Virus record (IMG/VR): IMGVR_UViG_3300028558_000016
Coordinates: 62,001-126,000 of that record
Strand: one strand, 5' to 3'
Length of the DNA stretch: 64,000 nt
Shown here piece by piece: positions 16,013 to 64,000 of this stretch (the first letter of the stretch is position 1; each line of letters starts with the position of its first letter). The translations under genes and the position numbers were made by a program. The notes under the pieces were generated by a model. That model saw nothing but the letters and a program-made list of their open reading frames with translations. It had not been told where the DNA came from and made no database searches.

Positions 16013-16041
16013 AAAAATGCCCGGATCTATGACCCGGGCAT
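16013..16041 (-). terminator. intrinsic terminator closing the DUF2828 + mini-RNA unit
   Basis: ATGCCCGGGTC-ata-GATCCGGGCAT-TTTT; the G:U wobble works only on the minus strand. Confidence 0.85.
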
Positions 16042-16165: not shown

Positions 16166-17626
16166 TTAGATTTGTACTACGTCGTATCTTTTATCTGAAA
16201 TGGTTTTCATCATCACGCTGTATGGTGTAAACTCTTCAAGACCGCCTTTAACAATTGATTGCAACAATGCTGGACTAAATCCAGAAACAAGTGCTGAACC
16301 TGTTTGAGAGAATTGAACAGGATTGTTATCCTGTCTTGCATGTACTTTCCACCAAACAGTTTTTGGAACAACATACACGATGTCAGAACCAGAAGCTTTT
16401 AATTTTGCATTTGCCTCAGCATATAATCTCACGACTAATTGTTGTGCTGTTGGATTATCCCAACCTTTGAATGCATCAAATTCCATATCGGAAATAACAA
16501 GCATCATTGTTGGCATTTCATCCTGAACAACTTTATGCTTAACTGCATGATCAAGCAATGAACGGTAAGCAGCTTCAATGTTAGTGTTGTAACCAACATG
16601 TCCACCGATTTGGTTCATTCTGCTTGGAAGATCTTTTCCTTTTAAATACTGAAGCGTTGGAACATCAGTAAATGTCATGAACGCATCTTTAAATGGTCCT
16701 TCGTTTCTTTCGCAAATATACAATGCCAATGACAATGCAACATCCAATGCGCTCAAGTTGTTGTTTCCACCAACTGCACGTTGCATTGAACCTGAAACGT
16801 CAGCCATAGGCATGATTCTTTCGGTTGCACCTTCAAGGAAGTTAGGAAGAGTTTCCCACTGTTTTTGATTAACAATTTTATCTCCACCATGTTTCAATGA
16901 CTTGATAATATCGTATGGATAAACTGCTCCAGCGTTTACTTTAACTCCAACTTCGCCTTTCTTAAGGGCTTCTCTATATTTCACAAAGCGGTCCGTATCT
17001 TGCTTGTGGAAAGCGGTCATGTATCTCGACATGGCCAATGATGGAACATGACTGTAATTAATTGCGCCAAATTCTTTAGCACACATCTTTTGCTCAACAG
17101 TATTGGAAAGCTTCACAAGAAGCTGTCTGAATTCTTTTGGAGATACCTCCATGTGTTTTCTTATCTTGTTAGCAAAAGTTCCTTTACGTGGCATCCACTT
17201 AGCACAAAGACCATGTTCGGATTTAAGCGCGGCAATTATAAATTCGATAGCTGGTTTTTCCAACTCAGTATTTTCAGTAATTAGAAGGTCATCCCATCTT
17301 CCAAACTCAGGAATAATGGAAATATTCTTCTCAGCAACATCCGGATGGTTTGTTGCAAGGAATAATTGGAACACATCACGGAAAACTTGACGCTCGCCAG
17401 AACCTCCACGCACATCACGTGCCCAGAATAAAATTCTCATTGCTGTCATAGGGTCTTCGCCGTATGCAGCAGAGAAAAGCTTAATAAGCCTTTGTTTATC
17501 CTGTCCTCTCATTGCACCAATGTCACCATAAAGGTCAACACACGCATTAAGGGTTGTGGTATTAGTAGTCATACCATTTTCGGTACGACCTGTCTCTGTT
17601 CTCATCGCGTCTACTAATCTTGTCAT
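16166..17626 (-). CDS. DUF2828 + vWA protein (Ro60/TROVE-related)
   Basis: TENG, RDVRGGSGER, GRWDDL, AKWMPR, VPSLAM, MIDAS DVSGSM, ISDMEFD, VSGFSP. Confidence 0.9.
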   Translation of the reverse strand: MTRLVDAMRTETGRTENGMTTNTTTLNACVDLYGDIGAMRGQDKQRLIKLFSAAYGEDPMTAMRILFWARDVRGGSGERQVFRDVFQLFLATNHPDVAEKNISIIPEFGRWDDLLITENTELEKPAIEFIIAALKSEHGLCAKWMPRKGTFANKIRKHMEVSPKEFRQLLVKLSNTVEQKMCAKEFGAINYSHVPSLAMSRYMTAFHKQDTDRFVKYREALKKGEVGVKVNAGAVYPYDIIKSLKHGGDKIVNQKQWETLPNFLEGATERIMPMADVSGSMQRAVGGNNNLSALDVALSLALYICERNEGPFKDAFMTFTDVPTLQYLKGKDLPSRMNQIGGHVGYNTNIEAAYRSLLDHAVKHKVVQDEMPTMMLVISDMEFDAFKGWDNPTAQQLVVRLYAEANAKLKASGSDIVYVVPKTVWWKVHARQDNNPVQFSQTGSALVSGFSPALLQSIVKGGLEEFTPYSVMMKTISDKRYDVVQI

Positions 17627-61615: not shown

Positions 61616-61664
61616 AATATTTCATCAACTTTAACAAACCCGAGCTAACCACTCGGGTTTTTTT
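61586..61664 (+). promoter_or_regulatory. attenuator: antiterminator (61586-99/61630-43) overlapping terminator (61636-61664)
   Basis: TTGGGTTTGTTAAA pairs with TTTAACAAACCCGA; terminator AAACCCGAG-ctaacca-CTCGGGTTT-TTTT. Confidence 0.7.
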
Positions 61665-61919: not shown

Positions 61920-62038
61920 CGTGGTGTAGAAGAGTATTGTGAAAATGGAAACCGTGCAAGGTGTAACAGTAAACAAAATGCTTCGTTCGTAAATGATTGG
62001 TCACATGAATTAATTCACTTGGCCATAACTGTAAAATT

Positions 62039-62308: not shown

Positions 62309-62385
62309 GGGGCCTTAGCTCAGTTGGCCAGAGCACCTGCCTTGCACGCAGGGGGTCATCGGTTCGAATCCGATAGGCTCCACCA
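62309..62385 (+). tRNA. tRNA-Ala(TGC), CCA encoded
   Basis: G3:U70, loop CTTGCAC. Confidence 0.95.
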
Positions 62386-62677: not shown

Positions 62678-62751
62678 GCTCCTGTAGTGGAACTGGTTAA
62701 CACGTCCGCCTTTCACGCGGAAGATCGCGGGTTCGAACCCCGTCGGGAGTA
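62678..62751 (+). tRNA. tRNA-Glu(TTC)
   Basis: Stem TCCGC/GCGGA, loop CTTTCAC. Confidence 0.95.
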
Positions 62752-62756
62752 CAAAT

Positions 62757-62842
62757 GTTGCCGTATGCAAATTGGTTTAAGCGAACAGACTTTCAATCTG
62801 TGTTCCGTATGGAACGTGCGGGTTCGAACCCCGTCGGCAATA
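62757..62842 (+). tRNA. atypical class II tRNA: TTC (Glu) anticodon with long variable arm and A73
   Basis: ACAGA-CTTTCAA-TCTGT, then GTTCC-GTAT-GGAAC variable arm. Confidence 0.8.
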
Positions 62843-62928
62843 CAAAAATAAAATAATAGGAGGACCCAGGCTGTGGACGCAACAAAAATGTAATTTCTCT
62901 TTACGAACAGTTTTGCAAAGAGAACGGA

Positions 62929-63720
62929 GTGGAATTTGAAATAGTAAAATCCGTAATTCCACATGATGACACAACTCTTTTCTGCTGTTCAGGAATGCAA
63001 CAGTATAAAAGCAAGTTTAAAGATCAAAATTATAAATGCACGATTTCAAACATCCAACCGTGCATCAGATTAAATGATCTTGAAGAAATAGGAGACAGCA
63101 CTCATTTCCTATACTTCAACATGATGGGATTCTTTTCTTTCAGAGAATGGACTGTGAAAAGAACAATTGATTTTTGGATGTCGTTCATTAATAAGATTGG
63201 TCTTAAAGTGGATTATGTTACAATCCATCCAGACAAAAAAGAATGGAAAGACTTTTATATTGAATACAATGTTGAAGTAAAAGAAGATCTCGAATGCACT
63301 TGGACTGATGGAGACCTTGGAGGATACTGCACAGAATTTTATGTGAACGGTATTGAGATAGGAAACATAGTCAATTGCAATGGTGATTGCATAGATGTTG
63401 GATTTGGTTTAGAAAGACTTGACATGCTTGTCAACAATAAAACAAAAGATGAGATAAGCGTGTTGAAGGAAACCATTGAAAAGATAATTGAAAGCGGTTA
63501 TGTCCCTGGACCTAAACAGCAGGGATACATCTTGAGAAAGCTTTTGAGATTGTTATATGTGAAAGGTGGAAGTATCGATCATGAATTCTTTGTCAAGGAA
63601 AAAGAAAGACAGGAACGATTGGTAAGAAAATATTCTTTGCTAAAACAAAAGCACAAAGACAAAAGCAAAGAATGGTGGTATGGAACACATGGAATTGATT
63701 TGAATGAAATGGGGCCTTAG
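62929..63720 (+). CDS. miniature alanyl-tRNA synthetase (catalytic domain and compressed helical domain; no editing or C-Ala domain)
   Basis: TLF..SGMQQYK, QPCIR.ND...GD..H...F.M.G.FSF, IEIGNIV, IDVGFGLERL, GYILRKLLR, Y.THG. Confidence 0.85.
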   Translation: MEFEIVKSVIPHDDTTLFCCSGMQQYKSKFKDQNYKCTISNIQPCIRLNDLEEIGDSTHFLYFNMMGFFSFREWTVKRTIDFWMSFINKIGLKVDYVTIHPDKKEWKDFYIEYNVEVKEDLECTWTDGDLGGYCTEFYVNGIEIGNIVNCNGDCIDVGFGLERLDMLVNNKTKDEISVLKETIEKIIESGYVPGPKQQGYILRKLLRLLYVKGGSIDHEFFVKEKERQERLVRKYSLLKQKHKDKSKEWWYGTHGIDLNEMGP

Positions 63721-63785
63721 CTCATTTGGCTTAGAGCGCTTGCCTGGCAGGCAAGAGGTGACGGGTTCGAAACCCGTAGGCTCCA
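63711..63785 (+). tRNA. tRNA-Ala(GGC)
   Basis: G3:U70, loop CTGGCAG; overlaps the AlaRS stop codon. Confidence 0.9.
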
Positions 63786-63789
63786 CTAT

Positions 63790-63854
63790 CGGAAAGGATC
63801 ACAACATCCCGTACGAGAAAGAACGACACAACTGTTGTGAGTTGGAAAGTTCTT
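63790..63854 (+). ncRNA. candidate kissing-loop RNA
   Basis: Hairpin loops CACAAC and GTTGTG are exact complements. Confidence 0.5.
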
Positions 63855-63855
63855 C

Positions 63856-63927
63856 GGGATCATAGTATAAGGGCAAGTACGCATCCCGCTCAGGGATGAA
63901 ATGCAGGTTCGAATCCTGTTGGTTCTA
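63856..63927 (+). tRNA. atypical tRNA (nominal CTC anticodon, G33, G3:U70, A73)
   Basis: GGGATCA/TGGTTCT acceptor, CATCC-CGCTCAG-GGATG, canonical T-arm. Confidence 0.65.
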
Positions 63928-63932
63928 CAATT

Positions 63933-64000
63933 GGGGAATTGATTTGAAATTGGCTATCATGTTAGACTTGCAATCTTTCGTTACGGGTTCGAGCCCCGTA
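63933..64000 (+). tRNA. tRNA-Ala(TGC)-like, truncated by the window end, weak anticodon stem
   Basis: GGGGAAT start, loop CTTGCAA, T-arm ACGGG-TTCGAGC-CCCGT. Confidence 0.6.

Follow-up and report, generated by a model that had tools for sequence, protein, structure and literature searches.

The 64,000-nt stretch analysed here (the window) comes from a 482-kb soil phage (IMG/VR record IMGVR_UViG_3300028558_000016, positions 62,001 to 126,000) and carries near its end an array of tRNA genes interrupted by an open reading frame related to alanyl-tRNA synthetase (AlaRS). Called from its first canonical in-frame start, this frame encodes 263 aa and matches the AlaRS class II core family PF01411 (E 2.7e-20; 72.8 bits against a cut-off of 30.3) and solved AlaRS catalytic fragments (E 3e-10). 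Four tRNAs with a G3:U70 pair surround the gene, and no terminator lies within the array. The downstream tRNA-Ala(GGC) is detected by both ARAGORN and Rfam, the latter placing it at 63711–63785 with 59.9 bits, and the last 10 nt of the frame (GGG CCT TAG plus the preceding G) are the first 10 nt of this tRNA. A sequence-only reading had described a miniature AlaRS embedded among tRNA-Ala genes with its stop codon inside tRNA-Ala(GGC), and this observation is confirmed. However, similarity to AlaRS and to family members starts about 45 nt upstream of the called GTG, around 62884, so that 263 aa is an under-call produced by the start-codon rule, and the position 62843 at which that reading began the feature is the end of the preceding tRNA and not of the gene.

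Table 1. Features of the mini-AlaRS locus (positions within the window)
Feature	Start	End	Strand	Description	Basis
Two upstream tRNAs	62678	62843	+	Glu(UUC), and an 87-nt form with a long variable arm; the second ends 14 nt before the Shine-Dalgarno sequence	tRNA searches
tRNA-Ala(UGC)	62309	62385	+	G3:U70, A73, encoded CCA	ARAGORN, Rfam
Shine-Dalgarno sequence	62858	62863	+	AGGAGG, 9 nt upstream of the out-of-frame GTG	Read from sequence; equivalent AGGAGG(T) conserved in all alphaproteobacterial and most phage class-B (cassette-bearing) loci
Short zero-frame ORF	62873	62893	+	GTG GAC GCA ACA AAA ATG TAA, +1 relative to the AlaRS frame; proposed true initiation site	Same arrangement in 120 of 194 non-redundant family genes
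Heptamer G_GAC_GCA	62875	62881	+	Proposed -1 shift site; Asp codon in the P site preceded by a base equal to its own first base, Ala codon in the A site	Conservation in the family
A5 run (A_AAA_A)	62884	62888	+	Alternative -1 slip site inside the zero-frame ORF, specific to this phage	Read from sequence; hairpin begins 10 nt after the AAA codon at 62885–62887
Predicted hairpin	62895	62924	+	8-bp outer stem (TTCTCTTT / AAAGAGAA) and 4-bp inner stem, just after the zero-frame stop	RNAfold, 72-nt segment, z -2.5; same hairpin in relative L154
Mini-AlaRS body	62878	63720	+	-1 frame, from the CGC codon to the TAG stop; predicted product about 282 aa if the shift is at GAC	Homology; AF2 model
ORF as called	62929	63720	+	GTG start, 263 aa; lacks the conserved N-terminal helix	First canonical in-frame start
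tRNA-Ala(GGC)	63711	63786	+	G3:U70, A73, no encoded CCA; positions 8–10 (TAG, 63718–63720) are the stop codon of the gene	ARAGORN
Odd tRNA	63856	63928	+	G1:U72, G3:U70, A73, G33 in place of U33, anticodon CUC	Rfam tRNA, 46.3 bits
Degenerate tRNA-Ala(UGC)-like gene	63933	64000	+	G3:U70, weak D arm and anticodon stem; runs 8 nt past the window end, to 64008	ARAGORN at a lowered threshold on the genome

To define how much of a synthetase remains, we compared the protein with AlaRS structures and sequences. It has the class II catalytic fold with motifs 1–3. The AF2 model (pLDDT 93, pTM 0.86) superposes on the E. coli AlaRS catalytic fragment, and the top Foldseek hits are AlaRS catalytic fragments (3HXU at E 9e-16 and TMq 0.78; 3HXU, 9JC7 and 1RIQ with probability 1.00). 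Alignment by hhalign to residues 1–461 of Salmonella AlaRS maps R62 to R69, W140 to W170, N161 to N212, D171 to D235 and G173 to G237, and these alanine- and ATP-binding residues are invariant in 78 family members. By contrast, the catalytic domain is trimmed and lacks the motif-2 loop GGKH, most of the helical tRNA-recognition domain is absent, and the protein ends about 95 residues after motif 3, leaving no editing or C-Ala domain. A search for the editing domain (tRNA_SAD, PF07973) returned no match anywhere in the phage genome, and the protein scores 75.7 bits against the alaS equivalog TIGR00344, far below its cut-off of 457. The helix carrying PSN(303)..GYVLRR and a D(400)TYGFP-like motif are recognizable, but the window's copy has Pro210 and Gly267 where E. 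coli AlaRS has N303 and D400, the two residues that read G3:U70; most of the family keeps the Asn (PSN, 57 of 78 members) and the Asp (WWxDTHGID, about YD400TYGFP, 59 of 78), although the D400 alignment rests on a short local match. The tRNA specificity of the window's protein, or even its activity, could therefore differ from the family norm.

The gene belongs to a large uncharacterized family of at least 784 proteins of about 255–312 aa at 55–85% identity, found in phages of all sizes and in Rhizobiaceae and other alphaproteobacteria. We collected 73 viral loci and 74 bacterial species, nearly all alphaproteobacteria. A PHROGs search gave only a weak hit to an unannotated family. Of 39 related loci with any tRNA within 1.5 kb, 26 have tRNA-Ala, the commonest neighbour, although many carrier phages have no tRNA genes near the gene. 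The phage genome also places a mini-HisRS 10 nt after two tRNA-His genes and a reduced ProRS near tRNA-Pro. Clustering of open reading frames over 147 loci found no conserved partner gene; neighbours are RecA-like and 5′–3′ exonuclease genes in some phages and unrelated housekeeping genes in rhizobia.

The upstream part of the coding region has no start codon of its own. No in-frame ATG, GTG or TTG lies between the TAA/TAG stops at 62854–62859 and the GTG at 62929, yet this stretch encodes the conserved Y..FC helix (residues 3–13), which is modelled at pLDDT 96–97 and packs into the core. Instead, a Shine-Dalgarno sequence and ATG or GTG in the +1 frame, followed by a G_GAC_GC core and a nearby stop, form a cassette present in 120 of 194 non-redundant genes and on both sides of the deepest split of the family tree. 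The shift-site variants are G_GAC (108), A_AAC (7), G_GAA (4) and G_GTC (1), and the next codon is always Ala, with all four synonymous codons seen. Synonymous alternatives are absent in either frame of the core, and when the P-site codon changes to AAC, GAA or GTC the preceding base still matches its first base and the Ala codon is kept while the -1-frame codon changes from CGC to AGC. A natural 1-nt deletion just after the motif fuses the two frames in two assemblies (loci L168 and L169). GCG or GCA followed by TGA, which would create an in-frame GTG or ATG, was never seen among the alphaproteobacterial loci listed or aligned. In one phage clade (loci L001, L022, L027, L055 and L065) a 10-bp hairpin with 3 compensatory pairs starts 5 nt after the Ala codon, and several alphaproteobacterial lineages also have a stem 5–9 nt downstream. 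In the window, however, the hairpin starts 13 nt after the Ala codon, Rhizobium proper shows no well-placed stem, and RNAalifold found no consensus 3′ structure across alphaproteobacteria, where stems are lineage-specific.

Neither sequencing error nor an alternative genetic code explains this arrangement. Contigs from three independent metagenome runs are identical and without indels, and the cassette recurs in 120 genes including finished bacterial chromosomes. RNA-library contigs of a Rhizobium carry the unaltered cassette, arguing weakly against transcript-level correction, because contigs drop rare variants and DNA carry-over is possible. We considered TAG as a sense codon as the reason for the missing start and the odd stop. 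The genome has three amber-suppressor-type tRNAs with CUA anticodons, which could read through the TAG stop of the gene. However, a TAA also closes the frame upstream, and genome-wide ORF coverage rises less on freeing TAG than on freeing TGA or TAA, and we reject this reading.

Together, these data suggest that the gene encodes a minimal AlaRS, consisting of the class II catalytic core and a skeleton of the acceptor-stem recognition domain, that requires recoding for its expression; we give this combined reading a probability of about 0.55. The enzyme would most likely activate alanine and charge the acceptor stem of G3:U70 tRNAs, namely the phage's own flanking tRNA-Ala genes and those of the host. 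In this view, ribosomes start at the Shine-Dalgarno-served GTG one base out of frame, read GAC and meet the alanine codon GCA in the A site; a fraction slip back one base (G_GAC to GGA_C) and continue in the synthetase frame, whereas the rest terminate a few codons later. Because the codon that must be decoded to stay in the dead-end frame is an alanine codon, low Ala-tRNA(Ala) would favour slipping, and synthetase output would rise when its product is scarce. The TAG stop inside tRNA-Ala(GGC) would be a by-product of tight packing in a co-transcribed array, such that RNase P processing and intact mRNA are mutually exclusive. Our analysis establishes the homology, the modelled fold, the retained catalytic residues, the family size, the conserved cassette, the tRNA-Ala linkage and the overlap, whereas enzymatic activity, the frameshift itself, the sensing of Ala-tRNA and co-transcription are inferred. 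G_GAC and its variants are not canonical X_XXY_YYZ slippery sites, re-pairing of tRNA-Asp on GGA is weak and GTC re-pairs poorly, although the window also contains A_AAA_A. Moreover, the AlaRS-frame codons just upstream of the proposed shift (GCN, GGA/GGT) vary as if they were translated, and the shift point may therefore lie earlier, or the motif may act at the RNA level.

Alternative explanations for expression appear less likely. The short frame could be a leader, with ribosomes re-initiating, or initiating directly, at a near-cognate codon of the AlaRS frame that overlaps or follows its stop. Consistent with this possibility, in 68 of the 87 cassette-bearing loci parsed (bacterial genomes and viral contigs) the AlaRS-frame codon overlapping the stop is CTG (CTGA), others have TTG, ATA or ATT, the ATT of L001 falls exactly where class-A homologues have ATG, and in the window and in locus L068 the stop is followed by ATT in a TAATT overlap (62893 in the window). 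However, loci with CTA, AAT or AAC at that position have no near-cognate start, the stronger GTG or ATG one synonymous change away is never used in the alphaproteobacterial loci listed or aligned, and in L022 the leader runs into the conserved helix. This model also leaves unexplained the G_GAC_GC core, the matching of the -1 base to the P-site codon and the downstream hairpin with compensatory changes, and we consider it unlikely. Even less probable is that the 263-aa frame chosen by gene callers is the real product, with the upstream similarity a decaying remnant or the gene a pseudogene in this phage clade. Close relatives (proteins P0002, P0003, P0005 and P0006; loci L153 and L154) also have ATG, GTG or TTG within a few codons of this position, but no usable Shine-Dalgarno spacing precedes it, the upstream codons keep the family's Tyr and Cys with synonymous changes between the window and L154/L153, and the cassette (Shine-Dalgarno plus GTG GAC/GAA GCA) is itself conserved in this clade.

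It is also possible, but unlikely, that the protein activates alanine without serving translation, transferring it to a small molecule, a carrier protein, tmRNA or a tRNA-like RNA including the minus-strand GGGG...ACCA mini-RNAs, or that it uses Ala-tRNA as a donor as does the ascamycin enzyme AcmF (PMC12945691). The precedents for aaRS-derived transferases such as AcmF, the loss of the G3:U70-reading residues and the motif-2 loop in the window's copy, the carrier phages without nearby tRNA genes and the adjacent odd tRNA would fit this idea. By contrast, all adenylate-forming residues are kept, most family members keep the acceptor-stem-reading Asn and Asp, no partner gene is conserved, tRNA-Ala is the preferred neighbour, DUF2828 and the mini-RNAs do not co-occur with the gene, and an Ala-codon-gated leader makes most sense if the product is Ala-tRNA. 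The stop-codon overlap could likewise be a selected device, in which RNase P cleavage at 63710/63711 would by geometry leave an mRNA without a stop codon, so that its protein would be tagged by tmRNA, itself an AlaRS substrate, coupling tRNA-Ala maturation to synthetase level. The 10-nt overlap is kept between the window (GGC) and L153 (UGC) at 71% protein identity, L154 has a tRNA-Ala-like gene 5 nt after its stop, and no terminator or promoter-like site separates the window's gene from the tRNA. However, the same overlap occurs with tRNA-Pro (locus L036) and tRNA-Cys (L161), the gene abuts tRNA-Leu in L047, and L154, L001 and most of the family have their own stop. TAG at tRNA positions 8–10 is a near-universal tRNA feature that would stop one in three ORFs running into a tRNA, which is what chance compaction predicts, and selection on the overlap is thus doubtful.

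The interpretation offered by the sequence-only reading is partly supported. [quoted passage not shown] The relaxed G3:U70 dependence it raised cannot be read from the Pro and Gly substitutions, as the Tupanvirus mini-AlaRS also lacks both residues and still needs G3:U70 (PMC10036535). That reading also named co-occurrence with DUF2828 and mini-RNAs as a test, and we found DUF2828 absent from 5 of 5 other huge phages that carry the gene. The proposed mini-RNA substrates are real (minus strand, 5′-GGGGAA...TTCCCC-ACCA) but sit directly downstream of the DUF2828 gene 46 kb away, an Rfam search gave only sub-threshold noise, and nothing ties them to this enzyme.

Canonical bacterial AlaRS, with about 875 aa (catalytic fragment 461N, PDB 3HXU), is the textbook case of a synthetase whose four-domain architecture is kept throughout life, and the smallest characterized natural form is the 461-aa enzyme of Tupanvirus (TuAlaRS; PMC10036535). 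TuAlaRS is likewise virus-encoded, lacks editing and C-Ala domains, targets only the acceptor stem and, similar to the window's protein, has Pro at the Asn position and lacks the Asp; however, it keeps full-size catalytic and tRNA-recognition domains and is related to the enzyme of its amoeba host, whereas the present family is about 180 aa shorter, occurs in bacteriophages and alphaproteobacteria and carries the proposed recoding cassette. The naturally reduced small-AlaRS of CPR, DPANN and Asgard organisms keeps the catalytic, tRNA-recognition (ATL) and editing domains (bioRxiv 10.1101/2023.05.29.542759), whereas this family has no editing domain and only a vestigial ATL domain. AcmF is also a truncated AlaRS-like protein with only the N-terminal domains, but has lost its ATP- and Ala-activation residues (N219Q, D232E), whereas the corresponding Asn161 and Asp171 are retained and invariant here. 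A family of about 280 aa that keeps every catalytic residue, spread through hundreds of phages and inherited in Rhizobiaceae, would define the minimal natural unit for acceptor-stem-based alanine charging, and would raise the question of how mischarging with Ser or Gly is tolerated without editing.

The proposed leader resembles the RF2 (prfB) +1 and dnaX -1 programmed frameshifts and experimental hungry-codon frameshifting (PMC5009743) in its out-of-frame start within a short dead-end frame, an A-site codon whose decoding would depend on the very factor that the gene supplies, as in RF2 autoregulation, a Shine-Dalgarno element 11–18 nt upstream and, in some clades, a 3′ hairpin as in dnaX. 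It differs in that the inferred shift is -1 at a non-canonical G_GAC site only 1–6 codons after initiation and the sensor would be a sense (Ala) codon; that review lists no natural gene regulated by hungry-codon frameshifting and no aaRS frameshift. The cassette thus raises the intriguing, although on present evidence unlikely, possibility of a natural hungry-codon switch, in which the cell or phage makes a back-up synthetase only when Ala-tRNA(Ala) runs short, for example when host AlaRS is inhibited or tRNA-Ala is attacked. This would be the first sense-codon analogue of RF2 autoregulation and the first recoded aaRS gene, and the enzyme would be the smallest natural AlaRS able to charge tRNA. 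The conserved cassette offers a directly testable candidate for feedback control of a synthetase by ribosomal frameshifting. Current database models of these genes are wrong at the 5′ end: RefSeq-type models of 295–312 aa translate the ribosome-binding site itself as KEVAY, while phage models are truncated. The leader also shares a 13-nt identity with the anticodon arm of a 90-nt tRNA-His elsewhere in the genome, which we treat as a probable coincidence.

The phage genome is 482,156 bp long and judged complete, has 37% G+C and 55 tRNA genes, and is found in rhizosphere metagenomes. Within it we analysed a 263-amino-acid open reading frame with a GTG start that matches Pfam tRNA-synt_2c at E 2.7e-20 and also matches solved alanyl-tRNA synthetase (AlaRS) catalytic fragments, but that reaches only 75.7 bits against the NCBIfam alaS model, far below its cut-off of 457. 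The tRNA-Ala(GGC) that follows is called by both ARAGORN and Rfam, so that the last 10 nt of the open reading frame are the first 10 nt of the tRNA, and the TAG stop is tRNA positions 8–10. ARAGORN drawings show G3:U70 and A73 in four nearby tRNAs: tRNA-Ala(UGC) with an encoded CCA, tRNA-Ala(GGC), an odd tRNA and a degenerate tRNA-Ala(UGC). The sequence-only reading of a miniature AlaRS among tRNA-Ala genes, with its stop codon inside tRNA-Ala(GGC), is therefore correct as an observation. The odd tRNA combines these alanine identity marks with G1:U72, G33 instead of U33 and a CUC (Glu-type) anticodon; if charged by an AlaRS and used, it would insert Ala at GAG codons, but it may equally be a decoy or a decaying copy. 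The degenerate tRNA has mismatched D and anticodon stems and was found only at a lowered ARAGORN threshold, having been missed by the default run and by Rfam. An 87-nt tRNA with a UUC anticodon also lies in the array, and its long variable arm (type II shape) is unusual for tRNA-Glu.

Coordinates of features at the mini-AlaRS locus, elsewhere in the phage genome and in related loci (the window being bases 62001-126000 of the record)
Feature	Position	Strand	Remark
Mini-RNA	window 16153-16095	-	5'-GGGGAA...TTCCCC-ACCA
Mini-RNA	window 16091-16046	-	5'-GGGGAA...TTCCCC-ACCA
Terminator hairpin after mini-RNAs	window 16020-16040
DUF2828 ORF	window 16166-17626	-	directly upstream of mini-RNAs
Terminator preceding the tRNA array	window 61636-61660
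tRNA-Ala(UGC)	window 62309-62385		encoded CCA
87-nt tRNA, UUC anticodon	window 62757-62843	+	acceptor stem better drawn starting at 62754
In-frame stops upstream of mini-AlaRS	window 62854-62859
AGGAGG	window 62858-62863		9 nt before GTG
13-mer shared with tRNA-His	window 62866-62878; genome 414402-414414		CCAGGCTGTGGAC
GTG in +1 frame	window 62873		frame reads GTG GAC GCA ACA AAA ATG TAA
Onset of similarity to AlaRS and family	near window 62884
A5 run	window 62884-62888
ATT overlapping leader stop	window 62893
Hairpin	window 62895-62924		starts 13 nt after Ala codon
Mini-AlaRS ORF as called	window 62929-63720	+	GTG start, 263 aa
Predicted RNase P cleavage site	window 63710/63711
tRNA-Ala(GGC)	window 63711-63786 (ARAGORN); 63711-63785 (Rfam)
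Odd tRNA, CUC anticodon	window 63856-63928	+
Degenerate tRNA-Ala(UGC)	window 63933-64008	+	runs past window base 64000 to genome base 126008
GlyRS-like core, 300 aa	genome 364549-365451		between the CUA-anticodon tRNAs
CUA-anticodon tRNAs	genome 358020, 368276, 374278		amber-suppressor type
ProRS, 385 aa	genome 393695-394852		lacks insertion domain; near tRNA-Pro genes
HisRS core, 210 aa	genome 414553-415185		starts 10 nt after two tRNA-His genes
tRNA-synt_2b core, 246 aa	L001:2220-2960	+	directly upstream of mini-AlaRS
HisRS-like core, 210 aa	L004:380-1012	+	about 5 kb upstream of mini-AlaRS
tRNA-Ala-like sequence	L065:2870-2945		upstream of mini-AlaRS in a viral contig
Rhizobial homologue, database gene model	L003:8001-8939

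To determine whether this protein is isolated, we searched proteins of similar length and found at least 784 relatives of 255–312 amino acids, most at 55–65% identity. DNA scans gave 73 loci in viral contigs of 4 kb to 608 kb and 74 bacterial species, almost all Rhizobium, Neorhizobium, Inquilinus, Phyllobacterium and Caulobacteraceae, and at least 279 metagenome stretches also matched. The nearest relative in the annotated phage collection searched is in the 634-kb uncultured phage LR745206, at 62.5% identity. Sources name the protein 'alanyl-tRNA synthetase' or 'alanine--tRNA ligase-related protein', and in the literature that could be searched we found no paper that characterises it. That literature describes the 461-amino-acid Tupanvirus enzyme (PMC10036535), the three-domain 'small-AlaRS' (bioRxiv 10.1101/2023.05.29.542759) and the catalytically dead AcmF (PMC12945691), and the huge-phage survey mentions phage synthetases only in general terms (PMC7162821).

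An AlphaFold2 model built on 78 family members is confident (mean pLDDT 93, pTM 0.86), and its best structural matches are AlaRS catalytic fragments, led by 3HXU (E 9e-16, TMq 0.78), with the alpha subunit of bacterial GlyRS far behind. Profile alignment to Salmonella AlaRS 1–461, which uses the same numbering as E. coli, equates R62, W140, N161, D171 and G173 with R69, W170, N212, D235 and G237; all five are invariant in the family, whereas the motif-2 loop GGKH (71–74) is deleted. After motif 3 only about 95 residues remain, including the helix 'P-S/G-N-x-K-Q-G-Y-V-L-R-K', which aligns with AlaRS 'PSN303ENRGYVLRR', and a C-terminal 'E-W-W-x-D-T-H-G-I-D-L', which matches 'L-Y-D400-T-Y-G-F-P-V-D-L' locally. 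In AlaRS, N303 and D400 read G3:U70. The Tupanvirus paper describes the pair as the conserved Asn and Asp (PMC10036535), and most family members keep both (Asn in 57 of 78 and Asp in 59 of 78), but the protein studied here has Pro and Gly instead. Tupanvirus AlaRS has Pro and Thr at these positions yet still requires G3:U70, so these substitutions support no conclusion about specificity. No AlaX-type editing domain or D-aminoacyl-tRNA deacylase is encoded anywhere in the phage, and because the Ser/Gly-admitting Asp-Gly pocket is retained we infer that mischarging is plausible.

We next analysed the genomic neighbourhood of 124 non-redundant viral and metagenomic genes. Of these, 39 have a tRNA within 1.5 kb, and 26 of those 39 have a tRNA-Ala, which is the commonest neighbour, ahead of Gly (15), Glu (14) and Ile (11). 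The same phage shows a consistent layout elsewhere, with cut-down class II synthetases that include a HisRS core just after tRNA-His genes, a ProRS beside tRNA-Pro genes and a GlyRS-like core elsewhere in the genome. LR745206 likewise has a 246-amino-acid class IIa core directly upstream of its mini-AlaRS, followed by tRNA-Gly and tRNA-Ala, and in the related huge-phage loci L001 and L004 mini class II cores other than the mini-AlaRS lie near it, inside tRNA arrays. Upstream of the mini-AlaRS of viral contig L065 is a tRNA-Ala-like sequence (GGGGGAT acceptor, G3:U70, normal D and T arms) whose anticodon arm seems truncated and which ARAGORN did not call. This clustering by amino acid supports the view that the mini-enzymes work with the cognate tRNAs. 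No protein partner is conserved among the loci compared.

Similarity to AlaRS and to family members begins upstream of the called GTG start, in a stretch that encodes the first helix, including the near-invariant Tyr and Cys of the family, and this helix is modelled at pLDDT 96–97. However, between the upstream in-frame stops and the GTG at 62929 the frame contains no ATG, GTG or TTG. Instead, AGGAGG is followed by a GTG in the +1 frame that opens a short reading frame. The same design appears in LR745206 and many other loci, and in every alphaproteobacterial gene, where it reads AGGAGGT-TGCCT-ATG-(2 codons)-CGG-GAC-GCC-TGA. In those bacteria the annotated N-terminal 'KEVAY' is simply the ribosome-binding site and the ATG read in the wrong frame: database gene models for the rhizobial homologues (295–312 amino acids), at L003 and at most of the alphaproteobacterial loci among L078–L151 (about 70 of 74), start at fortuitous upstream ATG or TTG codons, and many loci have no in-frame start at all. 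The annotation of this family needs revision. The sequence is not an artefact, as contigs from independent runs cover 62733-63900 (run X2), 62700-63253 (X3) and 62800-62984 (X4) with no difference and no gap. The leader also shares an exact 13-mer with the 5′ stem and loop of the anticodon arm of a 90-nt tRNA-His; about 0.01 such matches are expected by chance for one 13-mer, although this may be coincidence.

Comparison of 194 non-redundant genes demonstrated that 120 carry this cassette (68 of 70 bacterial genes and 52 of 124 viral or metagenomic genes), 66 have an ordinary in-frame ATG 10–11 codons before the conserved Cys, and the rest are variants. The core G_GAC_GC is invariant in 108 genes, and the other forms are A_AAC (7), G_GAA (4) and G_GTC (1–2). 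In all of them the base before the codon equals the first base of the codon, and the next codon is always alanine, with all four alanine codons represented. In the G_GAA variants the -1-frame codon changes from CGC (Arg) to AGC (Ser), while the zero-frame Ala codon is kept. Within the core, synonymous alternatives of either frame, such as GAT for Asp, or GGN or CGN/AGR in the other frame, are almost never seen, even in AT-rich phages. The zero-frame stop follows 0–7 codons later, directly after the Ala codon in 98 of 120 genes, and the start lies 1–7 codons before the core, four codons before it in 105 of 120 genes. On the family tree the cassette lies on both sides of the deepest split and is scattered through the phage half, and has therefore been kept across more than one substitution per site.

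We favour a -1 ribosomal frameshift in which Asp, Asn or Glu-tRNA in the P site slips onto the overlapping GGA or AAA codon while the alanine codon waits in the A site. Dual-frame conservation and the matching of the -1 base point to a site read in both frames. A natural fusion exists in L168 and L169, metagenome contigs from two separate assemblies, in which a 1-nt deletion just after GAC GC puts the ATG in frame with the synthetase whereas their sisters L170 and L173 keep the stop, and we take this to show that the out-of-frame ATG is the working start. In the clade of loci L001/L022/L027/L055/L065, a 10-bp hairpin starts 5 nt after the Ala codon and has three pairs with compensatory changes, and comparable stems 4–7 nt downstream occur in loci L006 and L137/L138, the Inquilinus group and L143. 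Viral cassette-bearing genes fold more stably in this region than start-codon-bearing ones (mean z -2.27, n=18, against -0.88, n=38). The Shine–Dalgarno element lies 11–18 nt before the shift codon, a distance at which such elements stimulate -1 shifts in dnaX and cdd. Other features argue against it: the site is not a canonical heptamer, tRNA-Val on G_GTC would re-pair badly, and the AlaRS-frame codons just upstream (GCN, GGA/GGT) vary as if they were translated. In the phage studied here and in its close relative L154 the hairpin starts 13 nt after the Ala codon and is better placed for a slip on the A5 run, and Rhizobium proper has no well-placed stem.

The main alternative is termination–reinitiation at the codon overlapping the stop of the leader. 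That codon is CTG in 68 of the 87 cassette-bearing loci parsed for it; TTG, ATA and ATT also occur, with ATT in the phage studied here. This model fails for loci with CTA, AAT or AAC, and does not explain why GTG or ATG, one synonymous change away, are never used in the alphaproteobacterial loci listed or aligned. RNA-library contigs from a Rhizobium culture carry the unedited cassette and so give no sign of correction at the RNA level, but this is weak evidence. A large recoding review lists no synthetase gene and no natural hungry-codon switch (PMC5009743). Because the codon whose decoding keeps ribosomes in the dead-end frame is an alanine codon, and the product of the gene is presumably Ala-tRNA, we infer that the arrangement has the logic of RF2 autoregulation. 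In total, the analysis establishes a real, very small AlaRS-type protein of a widespread, uncharacterised family that is physically tied to tRNA-Ala genes. In this phage, and in about 60% of the non-redundant genes examined, its expression in our reading requires non-standard decoding at a conserved alanine-codon cassette, whereas enzymatic activity, substrate range, the frameshift itself and its regulatory logic are inferred.

The overlap between the stop codon and the tRNA varies among close relatives. L153 (71% identity) again ends in the TAG of positions 8–10 of a tRNA-Ala, here UGC, whereas L154 (79% identity) has its own TAA and a tRNA-Ala-like gene starts 5 nt later. Elsewhere in the family, L034/L036 shows the same 10-nt overlap with tRNA-Pro(GGG), L161 overlaps tRNA-Cys by 2 nt and L047 abuts tRNA-Leu. 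No terminator-like or convincing promoter-like site lies between 61689 and 64000, and a terminator precedes the array; co-transcription is therefore likely, though inferred. U8-A9-G10 is nearly universal in tRNAs, so an open reading frame that loses its own stop next to a tRNA will often end there, and we read the overlap as compaction. RNase P cleavage would nevertheless leave a non-stop mRNA whose product would be tagged by tmRNA, a consequence that may or may not be exploited. The genome decodes by the standard code, but carries three CUA-anticodon tRNAs that could read through this TAG.

The wider interpretation in the sequence-only reading was only partly supported. It had proposed the GGGG...ACCA mini-RNAs as possible substrates and co-occurrence of the mini-AlaRS with DUF2828. 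DUF2828 is absent from five other huge phages that carry the mini-AlaRS, so the proposed co-occurrence is not supported. The mini-RNAs do exist, but on the minus strand, as two tandem tRNA-like minihelix RNAs with G1-C72, G2-C71, G3-C70 and A73 that match no Rfam family. They lie directly downstream of the DUF2828 open reading frame, are followed by an intrinsic terminator, and fold strongly (z -4.35). The RNAs look like a separate module tied to DUF2828, and may form a protein/small-RNA module in the manner of Ro/Y-RNA.
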